NCBI GenBank assembly: GCA_047495785.1
Contig: JBLDXI010000074.1
Location: forward strand, 248,001 to 312,000
Direction of reading: 5' to 3'
Source: Lepidodermella squamata
Lineage: Eukaryota > Animalia > Gastrotricha
Length of the DNA: 64,000 nucleotides
Part shown: in pieces, positions 1,572 to 54,567 of the stretch
Position numbering within the stretch: position 1 is the stretch's first letter
How the letters are laid out: each line of letters starts with the position of its first letter
The notes under the pieces: generated by a model
Seen by the model: only the letters and a program-made list of their open reading frames with translations
Database searches by the model: none
Told to the model about the DNA's origin: nothing
Program-made: the position numbers and the translations under genes

Positions 1572-3107
1572 ATGAAATTTCAGTCCACTTACATATGTCG
1601 CCCGTGCGGTGAGCATGCTAGCGTCGAAATCGACGGTTTCGAACTCACAGACCGTGTGATTACAGTCAAATCTTTGATCGAAGCGGAAATAGGAATTCCG
1701 AAAGAATTGATCCAGCTTTACTATGGTGATACCGAGCTACTCGATCCCAACCAGCGACTATGCGACATCAAAGGGAGCAAAATTAACGAGAACCCTTGCG
1801 CTAAACTCAGCTTTCTCGACATCGATAGGAGCAACATTAATGAGAAACCCGGACTCAGCTTTAGAACTCAAATCGCAATTCTTGCCATTTTGCCGAATTC
1901 CGACTTCAAACTCCCGGATTTCGACGTCGTTGCATCGATGACGATTGCCGATCTGAAGAAATCAATTGCAGGAAAAATGACTATCAAGCCACAGCATCAG
2001 CTGTGTCTCTTTCGCGGCGATGATTTTTTCGATCAATTGGACGACCATCGTACGGTTGGATTTTACAAAAGCAAAGAAAATTGCCTGAAAATTTCTGCGA
2101 ATATTTTTGATGCGGATTTTTTCGAAATTTCTATCCGCCTGCCGTCGAACAAATTACTTCCTATGTTGATTCACAAAACTGACCAAGTCGAGAATGTGAA
2201 GGAGCGCATTTTCGATCATGTTGGAATTAGAATTCCAGATGCTTTGACTCGGATCGATTTGGAGCTGAAAAAAGTATCTGCGACTTTGGAGAACAAAGAT
2301 TTCCTGGGCTATCACAATGTCGAACCCTACTGCGTGCTCACTGCTGCTATTAAAAAAGCTGAACCTTTTGAATTCAGCTTCAGACATCCTGATCTTCCGA
2401 AAGTCTTCAAAATCCGAGAGGTTCGAATTTCAGATAAAATTGGTGATCTTAAGAGCAAAATTGCTACAGCGACTTCGATGCCTATCACTTCGTATCGGTT
2501 GCATTTCGAATCATTGCATGGCAAATGGCTCAATGATGACAGCCTTACTTTGTTCGAATGTGGAATCCACGACCCTTCGACTCAAATCTACATCGCTGAT
2601 AATGATGCTTTGATCATTTCTAGCGGAGATTTCGGCGATTTCCTGATCAAACCAGCCGATTTCAGCCTCATAGTAGCTGGTTTGAAGTCGAAAATTGAGG
2701 AATTGAAAGGCGTTCCAAGCCGTAGTCAGCTGCTTTCTGTGGAAAAAGGACCGCTGGACGATTTCCCTGGATCTTTGGCCACTTACGGTCAAATCGGCCG
2801 GATGACAATTATTAAGCTAAAATTGAAGAAATCGGAAGAAAACATCGCTGTCAAGATTTCAGCCGGGGTTTGTCGAGCTATTGCAAAGATCAAAATCGAC
2901 ACTAATGCCCGTGAGCAAGGGATGAAAAACGTTTTGAAGAAGTATTTCCCGTTGGTTAACGATTTTGGACTGTACAATTTTGCAACAAATCGCCTGATTC
3001 TTTCGGTATTCGAGTCTCATGTCTGGAATAACACGCAGGTTACGTTGGGGCCGAAACCGCAGAACCCCAGCCCGATGGATAGGGGTGATTTCCAAAGTTT
3101 CTGGTGA
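1572..3107 (+). CDS. Tandem ubiquitin-like domain protein, copy 1 (about 6 UBL domains; terminal ubiquitin domain absent)
   Basis: 511-aa intronless ORF with repeated beta-grasp motifs (VKSLIEAEIGIP..IQLYY, IADLKKSI, VENVKERIF, IGDLKSKI, LKSKIEELKGVP..QLL). Colinear with 26273-27985 but stops at GDFQSFW. Splice acceptor tttgtag about 33 nt upstream of ATG. Confidence 0.8.
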   Translation: MKFQSTYICRPCGEHASVEIDGFELTDRVITVKSLIEAEIGIPKELIQLYYGDTELLDPNQRLCDIKGSKINENPCAKLSFLDIDRSNINEKPGLSFRTQIAILAILPNSDFKLPDFDVVASMTIADLKKSIAGKMTIKPQHQLCLFRGDDFFDQLDDHRTVGFYKSKENCLKISANIFDADFFEISIRLPSNKLLPMLIHKTDQVENVKERIFDHVGIRIPDALTRIDLELKKVSATLENKDFLGYHNVEPYCVLTAAIKKAEPFEFSFRHPDLPKVFKIREVRISDKIGDLKSKIATATSMPITSYRLHFESLHGKWLNDDSLTLFECGIHDPSTQIYIADNDALIISSGDFGDFLIKPADFSLIVAGLKSKIEELKGVPSRSQLLSVEKGPLDDFPGSLATYGQIGRMTIIKLKLKKSEENIAVKISAGVCRAIAKIKIDTNAREQGMKNVLKKYFPLVNDFGLYNFATNRLILSVFESHVWNNTQVTLGPKPQNPSPMDRGDFQSFW

Positions 3108-3480: not shown

Positions 3481-3787
3481 GGACCTGGCCCGCTGGTATG
3501 CCTTAAAAGAAGGGTGAGTTGGATCTATAATCTCTTCCTCGACATACTATGAAAAATATGAAAGGTCCGTCTGGCCCAATCGGTTTCATCGGCGACCCAG
3601 GCCCCATTGGCCATCGCTGCATGTTCGGCGTGCGTGGTCCTGCTGGCCCGAAATGCGACTCTGGGAAGCTCGGCCTGAAAGGTGATCCTGGGTGACTTGT
3701 TTCCCTGGATCCCCAGGACGAGAGGGCGAGCCTGGTGTTCGTGGGATCGGCCTGGAGGGCGACGAGGGTGAATCCAGCTTGCGATGA
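3481..3787 (+). pseudogene. Decayed collagen Gly-X-Y exon
   Basis: From 3558: MKGPSGPIGFIGDPGPIGHRCMFGVRGPAGPKCDSGKLGLKGDPG*, then after a frameshift FPGSPGREGEPGVRGIGLEGDEGES. Stops, a frameshift and Cys at two Gly positions. Confidence 0.75.
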
Positions 3788-4019
3788 GGAATTTTGCTCT
3801 TAAACGTTGCACAAAGCGTTTCCGAATAACCAGATTGAAAATTTCAATTTTTTCAGTTTTAAGATGGATTTTCATTTTCTTGAAATCACTCTTCTTATGT
3901 GATTTTTCGCATTTTTAGAGGTATAAACCCACGTAAAACGAAGAGGGTAGCAGCTTCCTCCCGAGTACTACATAAAATAGAGCCCACGATTCTCGGATTC
4001 TCGGAAAAATCGCATAATA

Positions 4020-4194: not shown

Positions 4195-4816
4195 TATTAT
4201 GTTGTGAAAAATCGCCTCGTCTTATTTTGTGAGTTTTTTCTCGAAACTGTCCTCTATATAAATTATTTTTTTATCAAACTTGTGACCCTACCAGGAAAAC
4301 CGTGAAAAATCGAGAAAAGTTCAATTTTAAAGATTATGTTCAAATAGGCAATTCGATATTGAAATGTATTGAAGTTTTTTTTCAAAATTTAGAAATTATC
4401 GCCCAGCTCAAATTTACGAGTTGATTTTGTAATAAAAATGGGGATATGAATCGGCATCCTTTTTCTGCTCTCGGCAAAAGGAATTTTTAGTTTTTGTCTT
4501 TAACCTTATCAGCCCACTATCGGAATATTTACGGGTCGCAAGAGCTACCGAACTTGGATTTCATCCAACAGAACTTGAAAATATCATCGAAAGAATTGTT
4601 TTACGTTGATGTGGGCACTTGGACGGAGGATCGGCGTGGAATGACCTTGATTGAAAATGTAGGAAAAACTTTTCCTTTGCTTTAGAAAATCGCGGAAAAT
4701 CAAGATACGTGGCTTTCCAGAATCATCGGGTTGACTCCTGCTTCATACTATTCATTACTTTTCGTACCCGAGTCAATATAGTCTGATTTTAGAATAGATT
4801 CTGATTTTGAGATTCT

Positions 4817-6670: not shown

Positions 6671-8384
6671 ATGAAATTTCAGTCCACTTACATCTGTAGC
6701 CCCTGCGGTGAGCATGCTAGCGTTGAAATCAACGGCTTCGAGCTGACAGATCGAGTGATAACAATCAAGTCGTTGATCGAAGCGGAAACGAAGATTCCGA
6801 AAGATTTGATCCAGCTTTACTATGGTGATACTGAGCTACTCGTCCCGAACCAGCGACTAAGCGACATCCAGATGAGAAATGCCGAGGAAGAAAATGTATG
6901 CGCTGGACTCAGTTTTGATACTCAAATCGCGATTCTTGCCATTTTTCCGAATTCCGACTTCAAATTCCCGGATTTCAACGTTGCTGCATCAATGACGATT
7001 GCCGATCTGAAGAAATTGATTAAAGCAAAAGTGAGCGTCAAGCCTCACATCACCTGTGTCTCTTTCGAGGCGATGATTTTTTCGACCAATTGGACGACCA
7101 TCGTACGCTTGGATTTTACAAAAGCAAAGAAAATTGCCTAAAAATTTCTGCAAAAATTTTCGATGCTGATTTTTTCGAAAGTTCTATCCGCATGCCGTCG
7201 GGCAAATTACTTCCTATGTTGGTCCACAAAACTGACTAAGTCGAGAACGTAAAAGAACGGATCTTCAATCATGGCGGAATTCGAATTCAAGATTCTTTGA
7301 CTCGGATCGATTTGGAGCTGAAAAAAGTATCTGCGACTTTGGAGAACAAAGACTTCCTGGGTTACCACAATGTCGAGCCCTATTGCGTGCTCACTGCTGC
7401 TATTGGAAAAGCTGAACCTTTCGAATTCAGCTTCAAGCACCCGGATCTTCCGAAAGTCTTCAAAATCCGAGAGGTTCGAATCTCGGATAAAATTGGCGAT
7501 TTGAAGAAGAAAATCGCAACTGCAACTTCGATGCCTATCACCTCGTATCGATTGCATTTCGAATCTTTGAATGGCAAATGGCTCAATGATGACAGCCTTA
7601 CTTTGTTCGAATGTGGAATCCACGATCCTTCGACTCAAATTTACATCGCTGACAACAATGCTTTCATCATTTCAAGTGAAGATTTCGGCGATTTTCTGAT
7701 CAAACCAGCCGATTTCAGCCTCATAGTAGCTGGTTTGAAGTCGAAAATTGAGGAATTGAAAGGCGTTCCAAGCCGTAATCAGTTGCTCTCTGTGGAAAAA
7801 GGACCGATTGACACTTTCCCTGGATCTTTGGCCACTTTCGGTCAAATCGGCCGGATGTCGAAAATTAAAGCCGGATGTAAAGCTAAAATTGAAGAAATCG
7901 GCCGAAAAAATCGCTGTCAAGATTTCATCCGCAGTTGGTCGAACTATTGCGAAGGTCAAAATCGAAACTACTGCCTGTGATCGAGGGATAAAACCTGCTT
8001 TGAAGAAGTATTTCCCGCTGGTCAACGATTTCAGCATACAATTTCACGACTAATCGGGTGATTCTTTCGGTTTCTGAGTCTTATGTTTGGAATATAACGC
8101 ATGTGAGGTTGGGTCCGAAGCCCCAGAAACCCAGCCCGATTGATAAGGGTGACTACAAAATTTTCGTCAAGATGCTGTCAGGGAAAACGCTGTCTTTCTA
8201 CGTCAATTCTGGCGAGTTGATTCATTCGGTGAAGGAGAAAGTTCATGCTGTTGATGGCATCCCGCCCGATCAACAGCGGTTGGTGTTTCGTGGTCTACAG
8301 CTGGAATCTGGTGGGACGGTGGGTGGGTATGGTATTGCTAACGAGGGCAGTATTCATTTGGTTTTAAAACTGCGTGGCTGTTGA
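6671..8384 (+). pseudogene. Tandem ubiquitin-like domain protein, copy 2 (pseudogene)
   Basis: Colinear with copies 1 and 3. 1-nt deletion near 7050, CAA>TAA stop at 7237-7239, CCGGATGT duplication/frameshift near 7850-7880, 1-nt deletion near 8035. Terminal ubiquitin-like domain ends HLVLKLRGC*. Confidence 0.85.
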
Positions 8385-9563: not shown

Positions 9564-9791
9564 CGTGAGCAAGCCATTAGAAGGCGTTACGGGCTAATAT
9601 TATCCATATAGGGTACCAATCCACCTTGAAACCTGGTGCCAAGACTGCTACCCGCTGACTTTGAGACATGACAGTCGAAACTTCCAAGTCTCAGAAGTAA
9701 CAGGTAGCAGCCCTGAAACCAGATTTCAAGGTGGATTGGTACCCTATATGGATAATATTAGCCCGTAACGCCTTCTAATGGCTTGCTCACG
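9564..9791. repeat. 228-bp palindrome with 68-bp perfect arms around a MITE core
   Basis: 9564-9631 is the exact reverse complement of 9724-9791; core TA|GGGTACCAATCC...GGATTGGTACCC|TA. Confidence 0.9.
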
Positions 9792-15691: not shown

Positions 15692-16726
15692 TCAAGTCCC
15701 AATAAGTTCTGCTTGCAATCTGGGCCGGAAGAGATTCAAAATAAACTCCGAGCAATTCGGGCAGCAGCGATTTCCTCGACGCATAATTTCACAAATGCAA
15801 GAGAAATGAAACGAATGGTTGCATGTTGCCTGTGCCCAATCTTCAACGCGAATATCGGTCTTACAAATTTCGCAAATGCCAACTGATGCGTGAGCTTCTT
15901 TCATAATGTAGTCGATGGCTTCAGCCGCTCTCTTCTTTGCGCCCATCAATGGAGCGCCGATCATCTGGAAATATCGAAGCAAGATGTACTCCATCAATTC
16001 AACGAAGCTTATCGGCGCGGGGCCAAACTTGGTTTCACATTTGTTGATGAAGTTGTTCAGCTCATTCAGACAATTTTTACGATAATGCTCATTCTTCTTC
16101 GCATATTTTCCTAATCCATTCTCGGTTAGGATCACCCGATTGCCAATTTTATCGAAAAACTGCTGCATTTCCGAATCATCTGCTCATAACGGGATTGAAA
16201 AATGAACAGAGGCTTTGAAAGCTTCAAGCATACCCTTTAGCCAGTTTTTCATAGATTCCTCCTGCGAATCGTCCATACCCTTTTTGTAATGCGTAGCGAC
16301 AACTATGCAGTTGGAGGCCCATCGAGAATCGAACATCTTCGAGATGAGAGCTAAATTCGCTCGTTCTTCACTTGAAACGCGGCCAAATTGCATCACGATG
16401 ATGATGCCATGCAATCCCAATTTCGCCCTTCTTATGAACTTGGTCAAGTTAAATTTCAGTTCAGTATTTGAAGAGCCGCTATCCCCGAAACCAACTGTAT
16501 CAGCAAAGAGCGTGTTCATCTTTGAATTGACAATCCAGCTTTGCTGTTTGGTCACTGAATTTACGGTGCAGTCGATTGGACATGGCGACTTGCATGCTTC
16601 CACACTGAAGTCCTGATTTTGCAGCATGTTAACTATTGTTGATTTACCTTTGCCCGTAGTTCCAACGACAATAATAATTCGCCGTACTGCAACATCAGCA
16701 TTGGTTTCGGGAATGGGATGAGACAT
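15692..16726 (-). CDS. AIG1/GIMAP-type GTPase fused to RING-H2 finger, gene A (326 aa; exons 16726-16234, 16179-15692)
   Basis: G1 GTTGKGKS, G2 SVT, G3 DTVG, GIMAP-like box GLHGIIIVMQFGRVSSEE, G4 THY. A 54-nt GT-AG intron joins in frame to CEIC...CNHSFHFSC...CPNC. Confidence 0.85.
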
Positions 16727-18072: not shown

Positions 18073-19133
18073 ATGGATGTGGTCCAAGATGTTCCAATCA
18101 AGAAAGTCATCTACACAATGGGGAGAACTGGGACCGGAAAGTCATTGATTGCTAATATGCTGTACAACAACGACTACTCAGTTATAGCATGCTCACAGCC
18201 TTGCGCAATCGGCAATACAGCAAACTCCGTTACCAAACAATGCCGATGGATCTTTGACCCAAAACGAGGCTACTTGTTCGCCGATACCGTTGGCCTTGGT
18301 GACCCTGTGAAGAAGCCCGAGGATGTTTCAAAGGAGCTGAAAAAAATGCTTCGAACAGCCGAGCTTGGCGTGCATTGTATCTTCTTTGTCGTCAAGTTCG
18401 GCAGGCTTACAGACGAGGAGATCAAAAATTTTGAAATCTTGCCGCTCATTTTTGACAGCACGTGGGCTGATCGTTGCGTGTTGGTGGTCACTCATTATGA
18501 AGGCGAATTGGCGGATATAGATGGCGTAGATTTAAAGCTAGCAAAGTGGGCTGGTGGAGAGAAACGTATGCTGTGGTTTCTCCAGAAAATCAAACGCCGA
18601 GTAATATTCACAGATAATTCAATCGATGGTGACTGCGAGGAGGAAAGCCGGTTTGTTATTTGTAGAAATGTTCGTTAAAATCTTGCATTGAAACTGATGT
18701 ACGCAGTCCGGATCGGCGCGACTGTCTCAATCAACTGAACGCATTCATAGATGATGCCGATTCGGTCACGCGCGCTGCAAGTCATGGCATTTTCGAGTAC
18801 GCGGCCCGTATCAAATACTTAATCGAGAACATATTAATAAAGTTTGGCGTGATGAATGAACGTCAACAACTTATTAATAAGATGCTACCGCAGCTGTTGA
18901 AGTCTGGCTGCAGCGTTGGCACGGCAGAAGACTGCGCAATTTGCCTCGAAGAGGTCGACGTGCGGAATATGTGTCGAACGTCATGCAACCACTTTTTCCA
19001 CTATGAGTGCCTGCGCAGGGTGGTCGATAACTGTGATGGTACCTGCCCCATATGCCGCTCGCCGGTGACAATCATCACTCGCCCTCTGTTACGCGATGAG
19101 CAGATGGTAGTAGATTCCAAGACTGCCGCTTGA
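18073..19133 (+). CDS. AIG1/GIMAP-type GTPase fused to RING-H2 finger, gene B (334 aa; exons 18073-18650, 18707-19133)
   Basis: G1 GRTGTGKS, SVT, DTVG, GVHCIFFVVKFGRLTDEE, THY, TDN. A 56-nt GT-AG intron joins in frame via RRDCLNQLNAFID (matches RKNCLNELNNFIN of gene A) to CAIC...CNHFFHYEC...CPIC. Confidence 0.87.
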
Positions 19134-24281: not shown

Positions 24282-24684
24282 GGTTGTACGACTTTTCTTT
24301 TCAGCAGTGACTTTTCCTCGGTGACAAATGAGCAATGACATTTGAGCTGCGACATTTGCGCAGTGACAATTCATCCAGTGACAAGTCAGCAGAGATTTTT
24401 GTTAATTTATATATTTTTCCAAATTTATTATTTTTATCTCGTTGACATTTGTGCAGTGACATTTCAGCAGAGACATTTCATCAGTAGAACTTCAGCCTTG
24501 TTCAGCAGGTGGAATATTCGCTGCATTAAAGTTGAGTTCAAAAAGTGCAAGTTCAATGCCCGAGATTTATAAATGAAAATTGCCGAATTGTCACTTGCTT
24601 ATTTTTCACTGATGAAAATTGAAAATTCACCGCTCAATAGTCACTGGTAATCTGTCGCTGCTGAAATGTCACTGCTCACTTGTC
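24282..24684. mobile_element. Foldback-like element made of about 14-15 nt CAGTGACATTT units
   Basis: Tandem GCAGTGACA units on the left and inverted TGTCACTG units on the right. Confidence 0.5.
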
Positions 24685-25347
24685 TTCAAATGATTATTTA
24701 AATTAATACTAAAAGTTTATTATTATCAATTTTTTCTTGCAAAGTGTCACATTTTAAGAGGTGTTTTGGCGTATTTTTGTACAAAATGCCTAATCTCCTC
24801 CTTTCGCTCGTATAAATTTGTTCAAATTTCGCTAACTTTCACAAATGCATCATGGAATTTTTCAGTTCTTTGCGCTTGCTACTTACAAACTAATAGAAAA
24901 TCAATTCCAACTTCAATCGGCGCAAGGCTAGTAGTTTGCCCGTTTTTCTTGAAAGGCTTTACCAGCGCTTTTTCGAAGCGGATGGTATAGGATCTTAGAT
25001 CCAGCCTCCTCCATCCCTTCTCGTGGGCTCTTGCTGAACGCGATTGAAATAAACCTGATAAAGAAAGGAACTTGTGCCAAAACTATAAAATTCAATTAAT
25101 GAGACATTCATTTTTTCCGCAAATGGACTACTTTATTTCTCGTTCGACACGTGACTCATCCAGCAGCTGGGTTGGGCGATTGCATAACAATGGGGACTGA
25201 TATAAGACATAAGAAGCATCAAAGCTTGCTTTTCTCGCTCTTCAGCTATTACATGGTGACAGTCTGCAGCTTTATTTCCTAGTGATAATTTACTACAAAA
25301 TTCTCCCAAGGTATTTCTCCCAACCAAAACCAATCAACCTATTATTA

Positions 25348-25527
25348 CAGGGTGGCCAAAAAATTCCGCAGAGCGGGAATTCGCTGCGCATCAATTTAAT
25401 GAGGAGTTTTGAGAAGATTGAGAATTTTAAGCATTCTTTTGCCAATGGAACTCCTCAATTTCTTGAATCTCCTCATTAAAATGATGCGCAGCGAATTCCC
25501 GCTCTGCGGAATATTTTGGCTACCCTG
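25348..25527. mobile_element. Tc1/mariner-type hairpin MITE
   Basis: TA|CAGGGTGGCCAAAA...TTTTGGCTACCCTG|TA with near-perfect arms. Confidence 0.9.
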
Positions 25528-25573
25528 TACAAGTATTTCTGGCCTCAAATTTCAATTTCAAACCTGAATTGTC

Positions 25574-25790
25574 GGTTCTATATGTCAATTGAGCAAACGA
25601 AAATTGAGCAACGAAAATGGAGCAAGGGCTTTTGAGCAACGATATTAGAGCAAAACGACACGAGAGCAAATTTTATTTACAATGAATAACAGCTGCAATT
25701 AATTATTAAATTTGCTCTCGTGTCGTTTTGCTCTAATTTCGTCGCTCAAAAGCCCTTGCTCCATTTTCGTTTGCTCAATTGACATAGAAC
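25574..25790. mobile_element. Mutator-like MITE
   Basis: Long TIRs with GAGCAA(C)GA units; 9-bp TSD TGAATTGTC. Confidence 0.85.
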
Positions 25791-26272
25791 TGAATTGTCA
25801 GCAATCATTTTTATATGTATATTTTATTGTATGAAAATTTTCAGAATTTTCGTTGACATTATTTTGACTCACAAAATTAAAACGGAATATTCGCAATCAA
25901 TTAACGATATACCTGTGCTATTTAGGTTTTAGATTCTTTCACCATTATTTCACAAGATCAAACTTGTTCATCATTTCGTTGCTCATTTTCGTTACAGGCA
26001 TGACTGGTAAATTGAAGGCTTCGCATTCACTCACCAAGTAATTACGATCAAAGGTCCGAATTGCGTCCAAATTGCGGCCGAATTTAAGAATTGACTGAGA
26101 TTTTTAGGGATTTTCTCTGCTCTATCAAATGATTATTGAAGTCGGGGAGGGAACAACGTCGATATAAAATCTTTCTATTAGCTTCACTATTAATTTTTGC
26201 TCTTCATACATCTTCGTCTTCGTAGATAAGTATTTGTAAATTTTGATCAGATTCATCAACCAAAATAAGTGC

Positions 26273-27985
26273 ATGAAATTTTTATGCAATTACATCAGCA
26301 GCCCCTGTGGCGGGTTTGCTAGCGTTGAAATAAATGGATTCGAGCTCACGGACCGAGTGATTACTGTCAAATCTTTGATCGAAGCAGAAACGGAGATTCC
26401 AAAAGATCTGATTCAGCTCTACTACGGCAATAGAGAACTACTCGATCTTAACCAGCAACTGAACGACATTCAAGAAATCAAAAAGAGCAAAACTAAAGAA
26501 AAAGATCTATGCGCTGGACTCAGGTTTAGAACCCAAGTCGCAATTCTTGCTATTTTGCCGAATTTCGATTTCAAATTCGCGGATTTCAACGCCAAGGCAT
26601 CGATTTCGATCGGCGAATTGAGGAATGTGATTGCAGGATTTGTGAAAATGAAACCAGGCAATCAGCTGTGTCTCTTTCGAGGCGACGATTTTTTCGATCA
26701 GTTGGACGAAAATCGTACGGTTGGATTTTACAAAAATGGAAACAATTCCCTGAAAATTTCGGCGAAAATTTTCGATGCCGAATTTTTCGAGATTTCCATT
26801 CGTTTGCCGTCTAAAAATTTGCTGCCTTTGCTTGTCCAAAAAACCGATTACGTGGGAAATGTTAAAGAACGGATCTTCGATCAGGTCGGAATTCGGCTGC
26901 CGGATGCTTTGCGCAAGATCAATTTGGAGCTGAAAAATGGGTCTGTTACTATGAATAACATGGACTTCTTACTACAGCACAGTATCGAGCCCTATTGCGT
27001 GGTTACTGCTGCTATTGGAAAAGCTGAACCTTTTGAATTCAGCTTCAAGCACCCGGATCTTCCGAAAGTCTTCAAAATCCGAGAGGTTCGAATTTCGGAT
27101 CAAATTGGCGATTTGAAAAAGAAAATTGCAACAGCGACGTCGATGCCTATCACCTCGTATCGGTTGCATTTGGAATCTTCGAATGGCAAGTGGCTCAATG
27201 ATGACAGTCTAACATTGTTCGAATGTGGAATCCACGACCCTTCGACTCAAATTCACATCGCTGACAACAACGCATTCATCATTTCCAGCGAGTATTTCGG
27301 CGATTTTTTGATCAAGCCAGCCGATCTGAACCTTAAAATTGCTGGTTTGAAGTCGAAAATTACGGAATTGAAAGGCGTTCCAAGTCGTGATCAGCTGCTT
27401 TTCGTGAAGAAAGATTCGATTGATAGTTTCCCTGGAACCTTGGCTAAATTCGGTCAAGTCGGTCGGATGTCGGTTATAAGGATGAATTTGAAGAAATCAG
27501 CCAGTAATGTCGCTGTTAAGATTTCAGCCGGAGTTGGTCGAACTATTGCGAAGGTCAAAATCGACGCTGGTGCAACTGCGCAAGGCATTAAATTTGGATT
27601 ATCAAAACATTTCCCCTCGGTCAACGATTTCAGCTTATACAATTTCGCAACAAATCAGCTGATTTTTTCCGCTACCGAGTCTTATGTTTTGAATAACACG
27701 CAGGTCCGGCTTGGGCCAATGCCTCAGAAGCCTAGCCCGATGAATAAGGGTGATTACCAAATTTCTATTCGGACTCTGACTGGGAAATTGTTTTCTTTTT
27801 ACGTCAATTCCGGCGAGTTGGTTTATTCGGTGAAGGAGAAAGTTCAATCGATCGAGGGCATCCCGCCTGATTCACAGCGGCTGATTTTTGGTGGCCGCCA
27901 AATGGATGTTGGTGGTACAGTTAACGAGTATGGAATCACGAACGGAAGTTGCGTGCATTTGATTCTGAAATTGCGTGGCTGCTGA
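26273..27985 (+). CDS. Tandem ubiquitin-like domain protein, copy 3 (intact, 570 aa, about 7 UBL domains, C-terminal LKLRGC)
   Basis: Intronless ORF whose ATG is equivalent to the paralogs' MKF start. The last 76 aa align gap-free with ubiquitin (TLTGK, EGIPPD.QRLIF, HL.L.LRG). No internal LRGG. Confidence 0.88.
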   Translation: MKFLCNYISSPCGGFASVEINGFELTDRVITVKSLIEAETEIPKDLIQLYYGNRELLDLNQQLNDIQEIKKSKTKEKDLCAGLRFRTQVAILAILPNFDFKFADFNAKASISIGELRNVIAGFVKMKPGNQLCLFRGDDFFDQLDENRTVGFYKNGNNSLKISAKIFDAEFFEISIRLPSKNLLPLLVQKTDYVGNVKERIFDQVGIRLPDALRKINLELKNGSVTMNNMDFLLQHSIEPYCVVTAAIGKAEPFEFSFKHPDLPKVFKIREVRISDQIGDLKKKIATATSMPITSYRLHLESSNGKWLNDDSLTLFECGIHDPSTQIHIADNNAFIISSEYFGDFLIKPADLNLKIAGLKSKITELKGVPSRDQLLFVKKDSIDSFPGTLAKFGQVGRMSVIRMNLKKSASNVAVKISAGVGRTIAKVKIDAGATAQGIKFGLSKHFPSVNDFSLYNFATNQLIFSATESYVLNNTQVRLGPMPQKPSPMNKGDYQISIRTLTGKLFSFYVNSGELVYSVKEKVQSIEGIPPDSQRLIFGGRQMDVGGTVNEYGITNGSCVHLILKLRGC

Positions 27986-28530
27986 AAAAACCCTTCTTCT
28001 ATGTAACTTGTAACTGATTGCTTACATAAAATCTTTGTACAAGGAATATTTCTATTGTGTAATAAATGTTTAGTAGGTGTTCATTTCGCCTCAAAATCGG
28101 AATTAAAATTGAACTCAGGAATTTTTTGTTGAAGGTTGAAGGTAGTCTGAAGTATACCAGAAAAATACTCACAGAGCCAATTTAGTTTTGGACACTCAAT
28201 GACATACTCAAGAACCGCCATTTAACGGAAAATTGACACCAAATATGACGTTACTCATCTGAGTCGCATCACCATAGTAGTCGCATCGTTTCATTCTTCA
28301 GAACTGAACCTGAAAACGAATTTTACCCAAGTTGAAAAAGAAAGCAGAAAACGTCTCCTCCGAAGTTACAGTTTCCTCTGAAATTTATTTCACGCTCACC
28401 GAATAAGAAAGCAAACCAGTTGAGTCTAAAATTCGCTTTTGGGTAGCAACCTGATTATCTTTGTCATTTAGTCATATTATGTCTAATTAGGCTATTTGGT
28501 AATTGAGGTAAGATGGCACGTTGCTAATAA

Positions 28531-28647
28531 CTCGCTAGCGGCGCAGCATAAAGTTCGATTATGCGGTGATTTTCATTTCCTTGGGTTTCACGCACTGGAA
28601 AAAGTTATACCGATATACTTCACGTTATATGCTGCGTCGCTAACGAG
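28531..28647. mobile_element. Small MITE-like inverted repeat
   Basis: CTCGCTAGCGGCGCAGCATA ... TATGCTGCGTCGCTAACGAG. Confidence 0.55.
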
Positions 28648-28686
28648 CTAGGACTGAAAAGCAGGGGTAATCTGAACTAACAATCC

Positions 28687-30537
28687 CTAGTCAACATATA
28701 GTTCCAATGTCACACGTTTAAAAAGACTCGACGGAAGTCGTAAACTGTCCCGAAGGTCCTCGGAATCGCGATAATGGCCGATAAAGCGACGAACAACGAT
28801 TGCGCTGAGCTGTTCCAAGCGTAACGGTTGCTTCTGCCTATCGGCAACACACTTCGCCAATGTTTTATCCGAGGGCAATATGTCGACGAGGCATTTCAGA
28901 ATTTGATTACAGTTACCAGCTGCCACCAAAACTGCCAGTACATCTACAATGATCAAGAAATGAATGATCACAATTTTCAATAACAGTTAATGACCTTACT
29001 TTCGCTTAAATGCCCGTCGGGGCAAAGCTCACTGATCGAATCGGCGGTTAGATGGGTAAGTCCCGAGAAACGCTTCTCGTCATTTTCCGAGGATATCACA
29101 CGTGGTCGAGGGAGGTCACAGCCTGTCATTTGCAATAAGCTGACCAAAGCGTAAATTCGACCCCTCAGACTCGCGCAAGTCACTGCAAGTGAAATCTCCT
29201 CCAAAAAACGATTCGTATTGAACTTGCTGCTGCACCTCTTAACCAGTTCACTGGTCAATGATGAAGATCCAACAGAGGCTCCCAGCATAAGGGCAGAGTA
29301 ACCGTCACTTGTGCTTTGAAATGCAAATTTTTCGTCAAATTCACCGTTCTCTTCGAGCTTGTCCAGTAATCGAATGAAGTTTTCCAAATCATTGCCCGTT
29401 GCAGCGATGTGATACGGCGTAACGTTGCCTTGAATGATTTTGGAACCGCAGCACGACTGCATTAGTTCACAGGGGGCGGTCAGGCAGCAGCCTATATTGA
29501 TCGCAGAAAAAATGAGCCGTAAGCTTTGAAATCAGTAAAGACTACCTTTTTCAATTAAATACTCGACAATTTCGTTTCGTTCGAGTGCGAATGCGAAATG
29601 AATAGGACGATAGTTGCAACCAGTCAGCGCCAGTTCCACATCAGCACCGCTCCTCATCAACTGAAATGCAATATCGGAGTGATCTTTTTCTATCGCCATC
29701 AAGAGAGGCGTATAGCCCTGTTGATTCTGCGCGTCAATATCTGCTCCTTTTGAAAGCAAAAGGTCAACAGTCTTCGCGTAACCTGCAAGCGTGTATGAAT
29801 TTGAGTTTCAGCTAAGCAGAATGTAGTCAAAGTTACCTTCCTGAACAGCCATATGTAAGGGTGTAACACAATTTGCATCGGCAAGGTTCACAGTCTTGCA
29901 TGGTCTATCAGCTTTGATTAGGGCTTTCACGACGTCCTCGTGACCGTAGCAAGCTGCTAGAAACAGAGGGGTACGTTGTTGCAAGGTCAGAGCGTCGATC
30001 GGGGCGCCAGCCTTAATCAAGACTTCTACCGTCTCCAAATGACCATTGACAGCCGCCCAGTGTAAAGCACTCACCTGACAAAAAGGAGTTTAATTATGTT
30101 ATTGATGTTATGACTTTTTCGAACGTCCTCACCTTCGTTCGGTAAATAGCGCGTGAAGGGTTAGCTCCGTGGTCAATAAGCATTTGGACCATTTCCTCGT
30201 GACCTTGTCTCGCCGCTAACACCAACGCCGTGTAACCATCAGGACAGTGGACATCGACGTAGATCTTTGTTTTATCGAGTAGGTATTTCCCAATTTCGAC
30301 GTAACCACGCTGGCCGCACAGGCGGAACGCGCCGGCGATTTGTTGCATGTCCAGGGCCGCAGGTGGAGCGAGGATTCGTTCTACAACATCGAGACGGTTG
30401 CGGTTGACCGCTTCGTACAAGCTCCATTTTGCTGGATCTTCAGAAGGCTTCTGAATGCCGTAGTTCTTTGATGTGCCAGTGTGATCCGGTGAAAATACCG
30501 GGAAAGTCGGGTCGTAAAAAGGGCGGAAATCCCCCAT
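28687..30537 (-). CDS. Ankyrin repeat and SOCS box (ASB-like) protein; exons 30537-30133, 30074-29837, 29782-29546, 29491-29000, 28943-28687
   Basis: Ankyrin motifs (TALVLAARQGH, SALHWAAVNGH, TPLFLAACYGH, TPLHMAVQEG, TPLLMAIEKDH) and a C-terminal SOCS box PLRLEQLSAIVVRRFI...LRLPSSL; in-phase GT-AG introns. Confidence 0.85.
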
Positions 30538-50275: not shown

Positions 50276-51166
50276 ATGCTGACCCGCCTCCGCGCGGCTC
50301 TTCTTGGCGAGCCGAATGAACCGAGAGGCCCGAAAATCACTGACCTTCCGACTGAAATCATTGTTAACATTCTTTCAAGGGTTGACCCTATAGAATTGCT
50401 GTTGTCGTGCTCAGTTGTCTGTAAGCGGTTCCATGACATAATTTCGACTGCTGACTTTTGGTCCGATCTCTTTTCCTATGTGTATGGTGTGGAAAATTTA
50501 GCATTGCTTCGGTCGAAAATGCCATCTCATCCTATTAACTTGAAGCGGTTGGTAGTTTTCCTCTCTTTTGAACGAAACTTGGTGTCGAATCCTGCGGGTG
50601 AGGATCACACGATCGACTTCTGGGAAATCACCATGAATGGAGGCAATAGATTGATCGTTGAATGGCGTAACGATACTCAGGAGGTACCCGGCTCTGGCAT
50701 GCGAATGACCAGAGGTGAATTGGAATTAGTTGACCGTCCAAATTGGCTGGATCTGCCGGCAAAGTCATGCTTTGTTTCCTCATATGGCCGCTGCGAGTTA
50801 GTTCAAGTTATTGAACTCACCGAACGAGGCTTCGATTCGGATATTCTCGACATTATTCAACCCCCTGTTGCAGTTGGAGTTTGGTTCGCTGCTCGATGGG
50901 ACTGCGGTGCCGAGTATAAATTGGATGTTGTTCTACGGGATGAAAATGATAAAGAAGTTGCTAGATTTCAGCAAACTCGTAGAATGACCGCGGACGAGGA
51001 CCGTTCTCGGTGGATTCCTCTACATCATGTTTTTTCTGACTATGGACGAGGCGTGCGAAAGGTAGAATTCCGTCAATCTGGTGTCGATACGCAATTTTGG
51101 CGTGGTCATTACGGTGCAAAATTTACGAATGCAACAGTCAAAGTTCTGTTTTCCACCCAGCGCTGA
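50276..51166 (+). CDS. F-box/FBA-domain protein (FBXO6/44/27-like), copy 1
   Basis: F-box ITDLPTEIIVNIL...CSVVCKRFHDII; RNLVSNPAGE, WFAARWDCG, DTQFWRGHYGAKFT. Confidence 0.9.
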   Translation: MLTRLRAALLGEPNEPRGPKITDLPTEIIVNILSRVDPIELLLSCSVVCKRFHDIISTADFWSDLFSYVYGVENLALLRSKMPSHPINLKRLVVFLSFERNLVSNPAGEDHTIDFWEITMNGGNRLIVEWRNDTQEVPGSGMRMTRGELELVDRPNWLDLPAKSCFVSSYGRCELVQVIELTERGFDSDILDIIQPPVAVGVWFAARWDCGAEYKLDVVLRDENDKEVARFQQTRRMTADEDRSRWIPLHHVFSDYGRGVRKVEFRQSGVDTQFWRGHYGAKFTNATVKVLFSTQR

Positions 51167-52144
51167 CAGATTTTTAATGCAGAGAAATAGCCATTTATTT
51201 GTGATTCGTATCATATTTGTTTACAATTGTTGCTGACTTTCAATAGCTAATTCAGGCGATATATTTTTGTAATTGTAAAATGTAAATGTTTCGGCTTTCA
51301 ATATTTCAATTTTATTCCTAGAATCGATGAATTAAATTTGTTGATGGCTTACTACACATACCCATGTCCTGCTATTTGGTGGTTTAACCTGCCGACAAGG
51401 AGAAGACTGTGGCACCCGCGAAGGAATCTTTAATCTTCTGCCCGAAAGAGTAACATATCGATTTTCACATTCGCTAGCTGAGTTTGGGAACTTCGATAGT
51501 CGAAATAATTTGGCTGTGTAAATTTTATCCAATGTTAATTTTAAACTATGAGTCGTCGGTCGCGCTACCTGCTAGGAGGGTTATGTTGGATTTTGCTCTG
51601 ATCAAACACTACAGTTTTGCCCTAATCAGCGAAATACGATCGTAAGCTCCGACCATGAAAGCTATCGTTGAATCTCAATCAACTCAGCCCGATCACTTTG
51701 ATTTTCTGAAATGTCTGTCTATTTTTTCCATGACATGGGTCATATCATAGGCACCAGGGAAATATCATAGGATTTTTTCTATGTGTTAGCCCGATTTCCT
51801 GCAGAAAAAGCCTTGTCCGACTAAGAATTGGTGTAATTTTTATCAAGATTTTTTTGCTCCGGTTATTAATTTTAGTTTCAATATTTCGATTGGCATTCGA
51901 CATTATCACATTAACTTTATTGGTAGCCGTAATCAGAAATGTGATGTCAGGCCTGAACTGTTTCTAAATTCTGGATCTTCTAATTTATTTCTGAAAAGCT
52001 AAGCTCAAGGTCTTCTTAATTCGTAAAATTAATATTTTCTACACTCGTTTGTTCAAATTACATTAAAATCAATGCACCACGGACTTAACTCAATACCGAT
52101 CAAGGTAGGTAACGATGGAATAATATCTTCAATTCTTCAGTCTA

Positions 52145-52459
52145 AAAAATGGTAAATGGATTCATGGAGACGTCCCATTCGTTGAATGGATGGGCCGAAG
52201 CCATGGGTCCCGAATGAGCGCTCTTAGGGTCGCTTGTTGGGGTGTCTTCAGTCGGACAGCTAGGTATCGATTAGTGCAGTCTCGCTGACACTCCTAATCT
52301 ACCACTTTTCACTTTTGTAACACGATGGAGTGGTCGGCCACCGTCGGGGTAGAGCGTCATTGATGAATCACGGCCGACCCGGATGGGGATCGAACTGGTG
52401 ACTGAATCAATCTTGACACTCTTGAGCAGACAGCTATCCACTGAACTACTGTTTGCCCC
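52145..52459 (-). mobile_element. tRNA-derived SINE
   Basis: Minus-strand head with A-box TAGTTCAGTGG and B-box GTTCGATCCCC, an about 230-nt body, and a CCATT-like 3' tail. Confidence 0.6.
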
Positions 52460-52586
52460 CTGTTCTTCAGTCTATATGCTGTAATATATGGAACACGATA
52501 CTTGATACATCTGCACATTTTCGGTCGCCGAGAATCCTTTGTACAGTTATTATTGATATAGACATTATATTGATGAATGCTGAAGC

Positions 52587-53480
52587 ATGCCTCTGGGCGA
52601 GTTGATTGAATCGAGAGACACAAAAATCACTGACCTTCCAACCGAAGTCATTGTTAACATCCTTTCAAGGGTCGACCCTAAAGAATTGCTGTTGTCGTGC
52701 TCAGTTGTCTGTAAGCGGTTTCATGACATAATTTATACTACCGAGTTCTGGTCCGATCTCTTTTCTTGTGAGTATGGTGTGGAAAATTTAGCATTGCTTC
52801 GGTCGAAAATGCCGTCACATCATATTGACGTAAAGCGGTTGGTCGTGTTCCACTCTTTTGAACGAAACTTGGTGTGCAATCCTGCGGGTGAGGATCATAA
52901 TTTCGATTTCTGGGAAATCATTAAGAATGGGGGCAATGGACTCATCATTGAGCGGCCTAAAGACTCTCCACAGGTTCCCGGCGTTGGCATAAAGATGACA
53001 AGGGGTGAATTGGAATCAGTAGATCGTCCGATGTGGTTAGACCTGCCGGCGACATCATGCTTTGTTTCTTCGCATGACCGCTGCGAGTTGCTTCAAGTTA
53101 TTAATCTCACAGAGCGAGGCTTCAATCCGGATATTCTCGACATTATTCAACCTCCTATTGCAGTTGGAGTTTGGTTCGCTGCTCGATGGGACTGCGGTGC
53201 CGAGTATAAATTGGATGTTGTATTACGGGATGAAAATGATAAAGAAGTTACTAGATTTCAGCAAACTCATAGAATGACCGCGGGCGAGGATCGTTCTCGG
53301 TGGATTCCTTTATATCATGTTTTCTCTGACTATGGACGAAAGCGAAGGGCGGGAAGGGCGCGAAAGGTGCGAAAGGTAGAATTCCGTCAATCTGGTGTCG
53401 ATACGCAAGGTTGGCGAGGTCATTACGGTGCAAAATTTACGAATGCAACGGTTAAAGTTCTGTTTTCCACACCGCGCTAA
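52587..53480 (+). CDS. F-box/FBA-domain protein, copy 2
   Basis: Close paralog of 50276-51166; basic insertion GRKRRAGRARKVRKV; DTQGWRGHYG. Confidence 0.88.
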   Translation: MPLGELIESRDTKITDLPTEVIVNILSRVDPKELLLSCSVVCKRFHDIIYTTEFWSDLFSCEYGVENLALLRSKMPSHHIDVKRLVVFHSFERNLVCNPAGEDHNFDFWEIIKNGGNGLIIERPKDSPQVPGVGIKMTRGELESVDRPMWLDLPATSCFVSSHDRCELLQVINLTERGFNPDILDIIQPPIAVGVWFAARWDCGAEYKLDVVLRDENDKEVTRFQQTHRMTAGEDRSRWIPLYHVFSDYGRKRRAGRARKVRKVEFRQSGVDTQGWRGHYGAKFTNATVKVLFSTPR

Positions 53481-53691
53481 GAGATATAGCCAATCAAGTT
53501 AACAAAATTGAATATATCAAACAGTCCGACTATGATTTCATACATTATGATCATGATTATATGCAGCTTATTTCCGAATATCAGCAGCTTAGTCTTTAAT
53601 TGTTGTGATTTTTCAATACTTCATATAATTTAGATTTTCATATTTTTAATTATAACTAGACTTGACCAATTAAATTTCTTGATGGCTAACT

Positions 53692-54567
53692 ATGGGAAAA
53701 TTCACTGAGCCTGAGGAAGAATCGCGTTTCGATAACCTGCCGTTAGAACTGATCTACCAGATATTATGTCATGTTCAGCCCAATGATTTGCTGCAGTCTT
53801 GTTCTCTAATCAATTGGAAATTCAATTCGATCATCAAATCACCATGTTTCTGGATGTTCAAATTTGAATCAAATCATGGCGAGAGAAGCTTCCAGATCTT
53901 GAATAGAATATCGAGACAGTCTTCCATCAACTTCAAGCGACTTGTTTTTAATAATTCATTCAATCGAAATTTGCTCCAAAATTCCTGTGGTCAATTAGGA
54001 TCGCCAAAATGCTGGACCATTGAGTTGTACGACGGTAATGGATTGCTCGTTGAATCAGTTCCACCGCCCGGATTTCGGACCAATAATGAAACGCTGATTG
54101 CTCAATCAAAAATCCGCCGGCCTTTTTGGCTTGAACTTCCTGCTAAATTTTGTTTCGCTACCTCATTCGGCCTGGGCCAGAAAAGCCAGGTCGTCGATTT
54201 ATTCCAGCAAGGTTTCCAGCCTGAAATTTTCGATCGAGTGAAACCGCCTATTGCTATCGGTGAATGGGTCGCTGCTCGCTGGGATTGCGGCGCTAGATAT
54301 CGCCTTCAAGTTTTATTACTCGACAGCAACAACAAAGAACTAGCCAGCTATGAAAAGTCTCTCCATTTAGTCGACCAAAGCGATCGATCGCATTGGCACC
54401 CGGTTTGGCACGTTTTCAGTGATTACCCGCCTGGTGTTCGCCGTATCTTATTTCGCCACTCTGGTGTTGATACCCAGGGCTGGTCGGGGCACTTTGGGGC
54501 CAAGTTCACAAAAGCTACAATCAAGGTGCTTCTGCCTGGTAGTACCAATTATTTTTCCACTGCTTGA
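53692..54567 (+). CDS. F-box/FBA-domain protein, copy 3 (divergent)
   Basis: FDNLPLELIYQIL, RNLLQNSCG, WVAARWDCG, HVFSDYPPGVR, DTQGWSGHFGAK. Confidence 0.9.
   Translation: MGKFTEPEEESRFDNLPLELIYQILCHVQPNDLLQSCSLINWKFNSIIKSPCFWMFKFESNHGERSFQILNRISRQSSINFKRLVFNNSFNRNLLQNSCGQLGSPKCWTIELYDGNGLLVESVPPPGFRTNNETLIAQSKIRRPFWLELPAKFCFATSFGLGQKSQVVDLFQQGFQPEIFDRVKPPIAIGEWVAARWDCGARYRLQVLLLDSNNKELASYEKSLHLVDQSDRSHWHPVWHVFSDYPPGVRRILFRHSGVDTQGWSGHFGAKFTKATIKVLLPGSTNYFSTA

Follow-up and report, generated by a model that had tools for sequence, protein, structure and literature searches.

The 64,000-nucleotide stretch of the gastrotrich Lepidodermella squamata genome analyzed here (contig JBLDXI010000074.1, positions 248,001 to 312,000 of the forward strand; hereafter the window) carries three copies of a gene family within 27 kb. 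The third, copy 3, is an intact gene predicted to encode a chain of seven ubiquitin-like (UBL) domains (D1 to D7), in which a cysteine closes the protein at the position of the reactive glycine of ubiquitin. An earlier note on this DNA had described a seven-domain chain ending in Arg-Gly-Cys. The 570-codon open reading frame (ORF) is indeed intact and ends LKLRGC-stop; six domains are recognized by sequence comparison and the remaining one, D6, is a probable UBL identified by structural modeling, colinear alignments and language-model features. We give about an even chance to the following reading: copy 3 would be a functional gene of a tandemly duplicated family that is lineage-restricted and of fast turnover, and its product a non-processable and non-conjugatable poly-UBL scaffold or decoy with a putative binding role.

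Ubiquitin-like proteins are usually sorted into modifiers conjugated through a terminal glycine (type I) and built-in domains that have usually lost the ubiquitin tail (type II). The present family fits neither kind, as its last unit retains the L-x-L-R-G tail and only the reactive glycine has become a cysteine. If the protein is made, it would provide a natural test of a deubiquitinase-resistant linear chain as decoy or scaffold, as well as of cysteine-based UBL chemistry beyond UBL3. Should there be no expression, the family would be no more than a transient branch of the ubiquitin genes of a single lineage.

The gene and its 3' end comprise the following features, with positions numbered along the window.

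26273..27985, + strand: copy 3, an intact intronless gene of 570 codons plus TGA with seven tandem ubiquitin-like domains, from its ORF and paralogue comparison
27980..27982, + strand: TGC codon of Cys570, at the position of ubiquitin Gly76 and followed directly by TGA, from the sequence and the alignment with PDB ubiquitin G76C
28061..28066, + strand: AATAAA, a candidate polyadenylation signal in the sequence 76 nucleotides past the stop

The ORF runs unbroken from its first ATG through 570 residues to HLILKLRGC, the last codons being CGT GGC TGC TGA (R-G-C-stop). We judged it unlikely that an intron or an alternative 3' exon conceals the true C-terminus, because our reading of the sequence finds no donor-like site near the stop, because AATAAA follows 76 nucleotides downstream and because the TGA is equally placed in copy 2 of the family. 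The window as a whole is eukaryotic in look, with sparse ORFs and with neighboring genes split by introns (CNOT1, rhomboid, ankyrin, F-box/FBA and Gpi16).

Upstream of the C-terminal domain D7, the first 494 residues were divided into six segments by a repeating beta-beta-alpha-beta-beta pattern, the segments being colinear with D7. The domains are listed below with the evidence for each; hhalign values are from thin profiles of three sequences each.

26273..26557, + strand: D1 (residues 1-95), UBL whose last strand is preceded by a variable insert; Pfam ubiquitin E 1e-4, short of the cut-off; hhalign against D7 E 1e-3
26558..26773, + strand: D2 (residues 96-167), short divergent UBL; hhalign E 9e-4 against D7 and 5e-4 against D4
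26774..27022, + strand: D3 (residues 168-250), UBL; hhalign against D7 E 4e-5, probability 71%; Pfam ubiquitin E 0.054
27023..27268, + strand: D4 (residues 251-332), UBL and most conserved domain; Pfam ubiquitin E 6.5e-7, 29.5 bits; beta-grasp fold in the AlphaFold2 model
27269..27496, + strand: D5 (residues 333-408), UBL; hhalign against D7 E 5e-3; 425 domain matches to UBLs; beta-grasp fold in the AlphaFold2 model
27497..27718, + strand: D6 (residues 409-482), probable UBL; beta-grasp fold in the AlphaFold2 model with a predicted local distance difference test (pLDDT) of ~82; ESM-Atlas features; colinear HMMER alignments
27719..27754, + strand: proline-rich 12-residue linker MPQKPSPMNKGD, the sole low-confidence stretch of the AlphaFold2 model (model residues 235-241)
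27755..27982, + strand: D7 (residues 495-570), a true ubiquitin-family domain ending LKLRGC; Pfam E 2.4e-20; PDB ubiquitin ~1e-20

D7 scores 72.5 bits (E 2.4e-20) against the Pfam ubiquitin family PF00240, for which the cut-off is 25.4 bits. In phmmer it matches PDB ubiquitin with E ~1e-20, and the match line counts 36 identities over 76 residues. L8, I44 and H68 of ubiquitin are kept; V70 is replaced by Ile, K48 by Arg, K63 by Asn, R72 by Lys and G76 by Cys. This agrees with the earlier description of the domain (36/76 identities, L8, I44 and H68 kept, R48, N63, K72 and C76 present). Furthermore, D7 can be aligned through residue 76 with the PDB sequence of ubiquitin G76C, which includes entry 5BNB. 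When the whole protein is compared with PF00240 the score rises to 128 bits, and the gathering threshold is passed by D7 and D4.

Sequence comparison also supports a UBL identity for D1, D2, D3, D4 and D5. The D2 profile returns 332 domain matches to UBLs of multi-UBL proteins, and the Pfam family Ubiquitin_2 spans the equivalent part of copy 1. Taken individually, D2, D5 and D6 have no match in Pfam, and D6 alone gives nothing significant with Pfam, hhalign or hmmsearch. Most pairs of domains within copy 3 show no similarity detectable by hhalign.

Structure prediction, which had been proposed as a way of counting the domains, answers for the chain's C-terminal part. AlphaFold2 models residues 251-570 with a pLDDT of 85.6 as four beta-grasp units (D4, D5, D6 and D7), each with the beta-beta-alpha-beta-beta order; D1 to D3 are without a confident model, the full-length prediction with the three paralogues as sole alignment reaching a pLDDT of 29. 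The alignment used for residues 251-570 held 36 rows, including colinear fragments of distant multi-UBL proteins, and the support that this model lends to D6 is partly circular because the alignment is made of UBL arrays. Language-model features offer a soft, independent indication: the top ten named ESM-Atlas clusters for D6 all belong to the ubiquitin family (best 0.92). In addition, D6 falls within single colinear HMMER alignments (query 271-563) that run over four consecutive UBLs of other proteins.

Foldseek matches the D4-D7 model best with linear tetra-ubiquitin chains (7eb9_A, 5b83 and 7yui), over all 320 columns and with E 6e-26. Further matches include ISG15, the HUBL region of USP7 and the tandem UBL of chicken OASL (7sbi_B). 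The copy 3 protein is thus predicted by modeling to fold like an uncleavable linear ubiquitin chain.

Uncleavable is suggested by the junctions, which are 3-5 residues in length and hold neither RGG nor any other ubiquitin-tail motif. The claim that the chain has no internal diglycine holds at the junctions and after arginine, where none is found; it fails for the chain as a whole, since GG dipeptides lie at residues 13-14 and twice within D7. As there are no ubiquitin-tail sites between domains, deubiquitinases are predicted to be unable to cut the chain into monomers. At the other end of the problem, adenylation by E1 and cleavage by ubiquitin hydrolases and ubiquitin-specific proteases need a glycine at position 76 and Gly75 as the P2 residue. 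Because ubiquitin enzymology requires Gly75-Gly76, the copy 3 protein as encoded would be neither adenylated by a canonical E1 nor processed by a ubiquitin C-terminal hydrolase, and for this reason it most likely acts unconjugated.

The same features place the protein among known kinds of UBL proteins. A type-I modifier has a C-terminal glycine (mostly as Gly-Gly), either terminal or exposed by processing, whereas both D7-bearing copies end R-G-C-stop, and at most one glycine could be exposed at the copy 3 C-terminus. A polyubiquitin precursor consists of near-identical cleavable repeats that each end in RGG, and copy 3 does not. What copy 3 does have is a set of UBL domains in one polypeptide with no processing or conjugation motif, as in type-II tandem-UBL proteins, and from its sequence we would place it in this broad, non-conjugated class.

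One might suppose that Cys570 is removed by a dedicated protease and that a non-canonical E1 then activates Gly569, so that the whole chain is conjugated in the manner of UFM1 or ATG8. In those two modifiers, removal of a short C-terminal extension exposes a single glycine, and the LRG tail retained in D7 would suit such a scheme. However, ubiquitin-type proteases and E1 enzymes need glycine at both P1 and P2, as is well established, and P2 is here an arginine. Moreover, a tail so trimmed would fall one residue short of that of ubiquitin, and no partner enzyme is encoded nearby, there being no E1 or E2 gene within the window. We consider this reading improbable.

Resemblance to linear (Met1-linked) polyubiquitin and its UBB-, UBC- and UBI4-type precursors lies in the head-to-tail arrangement of beta-grasp units in one polypeptide, and linear tetra-ubiquitin can be aligned with the modeled D4-D7 over its full length. 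Like polyubiquitin precursor genes, copy 3 is intronless and carries one residue beyond the ubiquitin-like tail region. Unlike polyubiquitin, its units are dissimilar, none ends in RGG and the last ends in RGC, not in RGG-X.

A second comparison is with the fused divergent UBLs of ISG15, FAT10 and OASL, which are likewise lineage-specific and fast evolving, ISG15 and OASL (7sbi_B) being also structural matches of the D4-D7 model at the level of the fold. These proteins have two such domains each, as against seven in copy 3. ISG15 and FAT10 are conjugated and have GG as their last residues, whereas copy 3 ends in RGC, and the UBLs of OASL are joined to an OAS-like domain. In protein searches, copy 3 showed no sequence orthology to ISG15, FAT10 or OASL. 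The OASL tandem UBL pair, which is without a conjugation motif, has been reported to mimic polyubiquitin (PMC6019448).

UBL3/MUB proteins share with copy 3 the ubiquitin fold and a C-terminal cysteine in place of glycine. They differ in having a single UBL followed by a CCaaX prenylation box, while the cysteine of copy 3 is the final residue after an LRG tail. No CAAX prenylation box is present at the copy 3 end, where nothing follows the cysteine of -RGC. Cys570 could still be S-acylated (palmitoylated), tethering the chain to a membrane as prenylation does for MUB/UBL3. Proteins of the ubiquitin fold that are anchored in membranes have been described (PMC6158211), and a solvent-exposed terminal cysteine after the basic stretch K-L-R might be a substrate, but the copy 3 sequence contains neither a CAAX, CC or CXC motif nor a transmembrane segment, and near the cysteine there is no signal for myristoylation and no hydrophobic one. 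Such tethering seems to us quite improbable.

We next compared copy 3 with its two paralogues in the window.

1572..3107, + strand: copy 1, an open paralogue of 511 codons with D1-D6 only; homology stops at 3101/3102
6671..8384, + strand: copy 2, a seven-domain pseudogene ending LVLKLRGC (TGT) TGA; three frameshifts and one in-frame stop

Homology of copy 1 to the other copies stops exactly where D7 would start, and neither a D7 remnant nor an AATAAA was found downstream of it. The lesions of copy 2 are a 1-nucleotide deletion near 7049, a stop codon at 7237-7239 where CAA has become TAA, a 13-nucleotide insertion (a partial duplication) near 7859 and a 2-nucleotide deletion near 8036, and from these the copy is assigned as a pseudogene. 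We rejected assembly errors in homopolymers as the source of its frameshifts: none of them lies in a homopolymer and one is the 13-nucleotide partial duplication. Copy 3 is therefore the sole intact seven-domain gene in the window. With one intact, one truncated and one pseudogenic copy, the family is of fast turnover, which fits a fast-evolving role. An 89-nucleotide direct repeat (78% identical; positions 55-143 and 4511-4599) has a spacing of 4456 nucleotides, and because of this spacing we suggest that copies 1 and 2 lie within a tandem duplication unit of ~4.5-5 kb.

The damage to two of the three window copies raises the question of whether the whole family is decaying or silent, a set of young duplicates with no functional product. 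The cysteine would then be a frozen accident, for example a polyubiquitin cap after loss of a Gly codon; many polyubiquitin genes are known to bear one extra residue past the last GG. The lack of any public RNA run containing the gene and of any orthologue in our protein and metagenome searches points the same way. Against decay, dN/dS (the ratio of nonsynonymous to synonymous substitutions, Nei-Gojobori) is ~0.25 for every pair: copy 3 gives 0.23 with copy 1 and 0.26 with copy 2, and copies 1 and 2 give 0.24 with each other, the dS values being 0.36-0.74. The lowest values among domains are those of D4 (0.06-0.11), and D7 has a dN/dS of 0.26 at dS 0.92 between copies 3 and 2. Homology of copy 3 to its paralogues covers 26272-27990, from 1 base before the ATG to 5 bases past the stop. 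Since it is confined in this way to the coding sequence, the flanks must have diverged beyond detection while the coding sequence can still be aligned, and the 570-codon frame of copy 3 has been kept intact.

A public sequencing run (X1) adds contigs that diverge by 5-10% from copy 3, in which 19 of the 28 listed differences fall at third codon positions (binomial p = 2e-4), 17 of these 19 being synonymous. The family has thus been under purifying selection, evolving as protein-coding sequence, and copy 2 must have been damaged only recently. On these grounds we regard decay of the whole family as unlikely.

The purifying selection just described concerns the whole chain, and the terminal cysteine calls for separate treatment. 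LKLRGC followed by TGA is found in both D7-bearing copies at dS ~0.9, the cysteine codon being TGT in copy 2 and TGC in copy 3. From this synonymous difference the earlier note had argued that the cysteine is unlikely to be a sequencing error; the codons are as stated, although the argument is weakened by copy 2 being a pseudogene. Retention of the cysteine over this distance may be taken as mild evidence of constraint, with two sequences to go by; we estimate roughly that a codon under no selection would be retained in about 1/10 of cases.

Run X1 was the single run with the gene in our search of public runs. Over 24300-30200 its coverage of intergenic DNA is even, and in the neighboring ankyrin gene it shows no skipping of introns; for these two reasons we take its contigs to be DNA. 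Some of them, 6-8% divergent from copy 3 at 26371-27508, have a depth similar to that of the identical contigs and represent either a divergent second haplotype or another paralogue, closer to copy 3, at some other place in the genome.

To the extent that searches for relatives can tell, the family is lineage-restricted and has no member in public protein sets. A word-index search with the copy 3 protein gave no match; its words were drawn from the first 500 residues, which effectively excludes D7. Among 1.84 billion cluster representatives searched with HMMER, no orthologue of D1-D6 was found: there were 76 matches, with E no lower than 2e-23 and identity no higher than 31%. At their head stand metagenomic proteins, unannotated and 700-1600 residues in length, with 8-18 ubiquitin-family domains and non-UBL tails. 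These multi-UBL giants (P0001-P0016) resemble copy 3 in being long, uncleavable arrays of divergent UBLs, with 24-31% identity to D1-D6; unlike it, they have non-UBL tails rich in lysine and lack an RGC end, and they are not orthologues. A scan of metagenome contigs with a single protein gave 103 pattern matches and no relative.

A search with D7 only returned 13 proteins, among which the cysteine end reappears. P0089 is an unannotated protein of 494 residues with a C-terminal ubiquitin domain ending HLVLKLRGC-stop, its last nine residues being those of copy 2 in the window, and P0094 is a 95.5%-identical variant from a second JGI sample. The coding stretches of this pair are as follows.

L001:51-1535: P0089, from one JGI sample
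L002:67-1551: P0094, from the second JGI sample

Their ubiquitin domain is only 50% identical to D7, the N-terminal 415 residues of P0089 and P0094 are unrelated to copy 3 (one internal UBL plus non-UBL regions), and the cysteine end is probably of independent origin. A profile search for multi-UBL proteins ending LRGC had been proposed; no giant qualifies, and these two unrelated proteins do carry the RGC end. Two other proteins have serine at the same place: P0092 ends LVLKLRGS, and P0086, an Iris pallida 'polyubiquitin', ends VVLRLRGS. Lys72 is found in P0089 and P0092, and Arg72 is kept in P0086. By these alignments, C-terminal ubiquitin domains in which Cys or Ser replaces Gly76 recur outside the family, and the recurrence suggests that such an end is a usable design. 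That cysteine and serine are both single-base changes from GGY fits a simple explanation in which the glycine is merely blocked.

The recurrence may also be read in favor of a specific role for the thiol. Cys570 could be a reactive handle, the tail guiding the thiol into the clefts of E1, E2, HECT/RBR or deubiquitinase enzymes, where a redox-dependent disulfide would trap or regulate the enzyme; alternatively, it would mark targets by disulfides, as reported for UBL3. The cysteine occupies precisely position 76, behind an L-x-L-R-G tail that has been kept, and the LVLKLRGC end is found again in the unrelated P0089. Engineered ubiquitin G76C, a laboratory mutant made for disulfide mimics of E2~Ub and not a natural protein, has the identical residue at the identical position of a ubiquitin-family domain, with which D7 can be aligned through residue 76. 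It is a standard reagent that forms a disulfide with the catalytic cysteine of E2 enzymes, for example Ube2S in PDB entry 5BNB (PMC4734694). For UBL3, a disulfide-type modification of targets through its C-terminal cysteines has been reported (PMC6158211). However, the cytosol is reducing and such disulfides would be short-lived there, the G76C adducts were made in vitro under oxidizing conditions, and UBL3 requires a CAAX box and membrane anchoring, both absent in copy 3. The substitution itself speaks for caution, as Gly to Cys is among the few single-base changes from GGY and the serine of P0092 and P0086 is another, which would fit the view that any block will do. A reactive handle is thus unlikely in our opinion.

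A stronger form of this idea would make the terminal cysteine a natural 'ubiquitin G76C' warhead or handle, by which a deubiquitinase-proof chain is attached covalently but reversibly, through a disulfide or through a thioester formed by acyl shift, to catalytic cysteines of the ubiquitin machinery or to targets with no need of E1. We think it rather unlikely. If true, it would amount to a redox-gated, cysteine-based ubiquitin-like modification, and the recurrence of LVLKLRGC would be convergence on that chemistry. We found no report in the literature of a multi-UBL or tandem-UBL protein ending in Cys (RGC). A possible role of the terminal cysteine as a C-degron was dropped, the paper that we checked having no mention of a C-terminal cysteine.

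Finally among the uses of the thiol, the Gly-Cys bond might undergo an N-to-S acyl shift, giving a thioester at Gly569 that passes to a thiol or amine without E1. In chemical protein synthesis, peptides with a Gly-Cys-COOH end are indeed converted selectively to thioesters through N-to-S acyl transfer, yet this takes ~60 C, acidic pH and excess thiol (PMC3277902), and Pfam detects no Hint or intein-like domain in copy 3. Such self-activation is highly improbable.

We thus return to a non-conjugatable scaffold or decoy. The copy 3 protein may be a stable linear-polyubiquitin-like chain that stays unconjugated and is read by ubiquitin- or UBL-binding proteins, a role for which the polyubiquitin mimicry reported for the OASL tandem UBLs is the precedent. 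D7 would be the main docking module, as it is the least diverged and keeps the L8/I44/H68/I70 patch together with the L-K-L-R-G tail, and Cys570 would be a conjugation-blocking end, proof against E1 and deubiquitinase chemistry. The rapid birth and death of copies may point to a conflict- or stress-related role, such as that of free ISG15, FAT10 and the OASL tandem UBLs. Of the three readings first offered (a mimic of polyubiquitin, or a decoy, that cannot be cleaved, a precursor that is cut back to LRG and a modifier using thiol chemistry), the non-cleavable chain is supported by the absence of RGG at the junctions and by the match of D4-D7 to tetra-ubiquitin; these data do not discriminate between binding, trimming and thiol chemistry.

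Several observations weigh against the scaffold or decoy reading. D7 retains the L-K-L-R-G tail, whereas type-II UBLs usually lose it, a sign that it may still be inserted into the cleft of an enzyme or have some other use. D7 may even be dispensable to the family, since the frame of copy 1 is open without it. Binding by canonical readers cannot be assumed because D1-D6 are so diverged, the I44-equivalent of D4 being a histidine. Conservation of the cysteine comes down to two sequences in the window, one of them a pseudogene, and the only public run with copy 3 consists of DNA contigs, the search having returned no RNA run with the gene.

Several repeats and unrelated genes lie near the three copies. 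Two inverted-repeat elements stand just upstream of copy 3 at 25285-25875, with arms at 25346-25415/25460-25529 and 25610-25676/25705-25771 (complementarity 91-96%). Their summed contig depth in run X1 reaches up to ~28000, against ~30-80 nearby, and they look like a high-copy repeat of the miniature inverted-repeat transposable element type. Downstream of copy 2, an inverted repeat at 9564-9791 has 112 nucleotides resembling a perfect hairpin (88% complementary, 4-nucleotide loop). Collagen-like Gly-X-Y ORF fragments (3549-3790, + strand) directly follow the truncated copy 1.

Elsewhere in the window, Pfam identifies an AIG1/GIMAP-type GTPase ORF beside a same-strand RING-finger ORF (15692-16726, - strand) and, 1.3 kb away, a second AIG1 GTPase (18073-18678, + strand). 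Three tandem, intronless F-box plus FBA (FBXO2/6-like) paralogues occupy 50276-54567 on the + strand; Pfam FBA matches the first and third with E ~1e-46, and the first two are ~88-92% identical in DNA.

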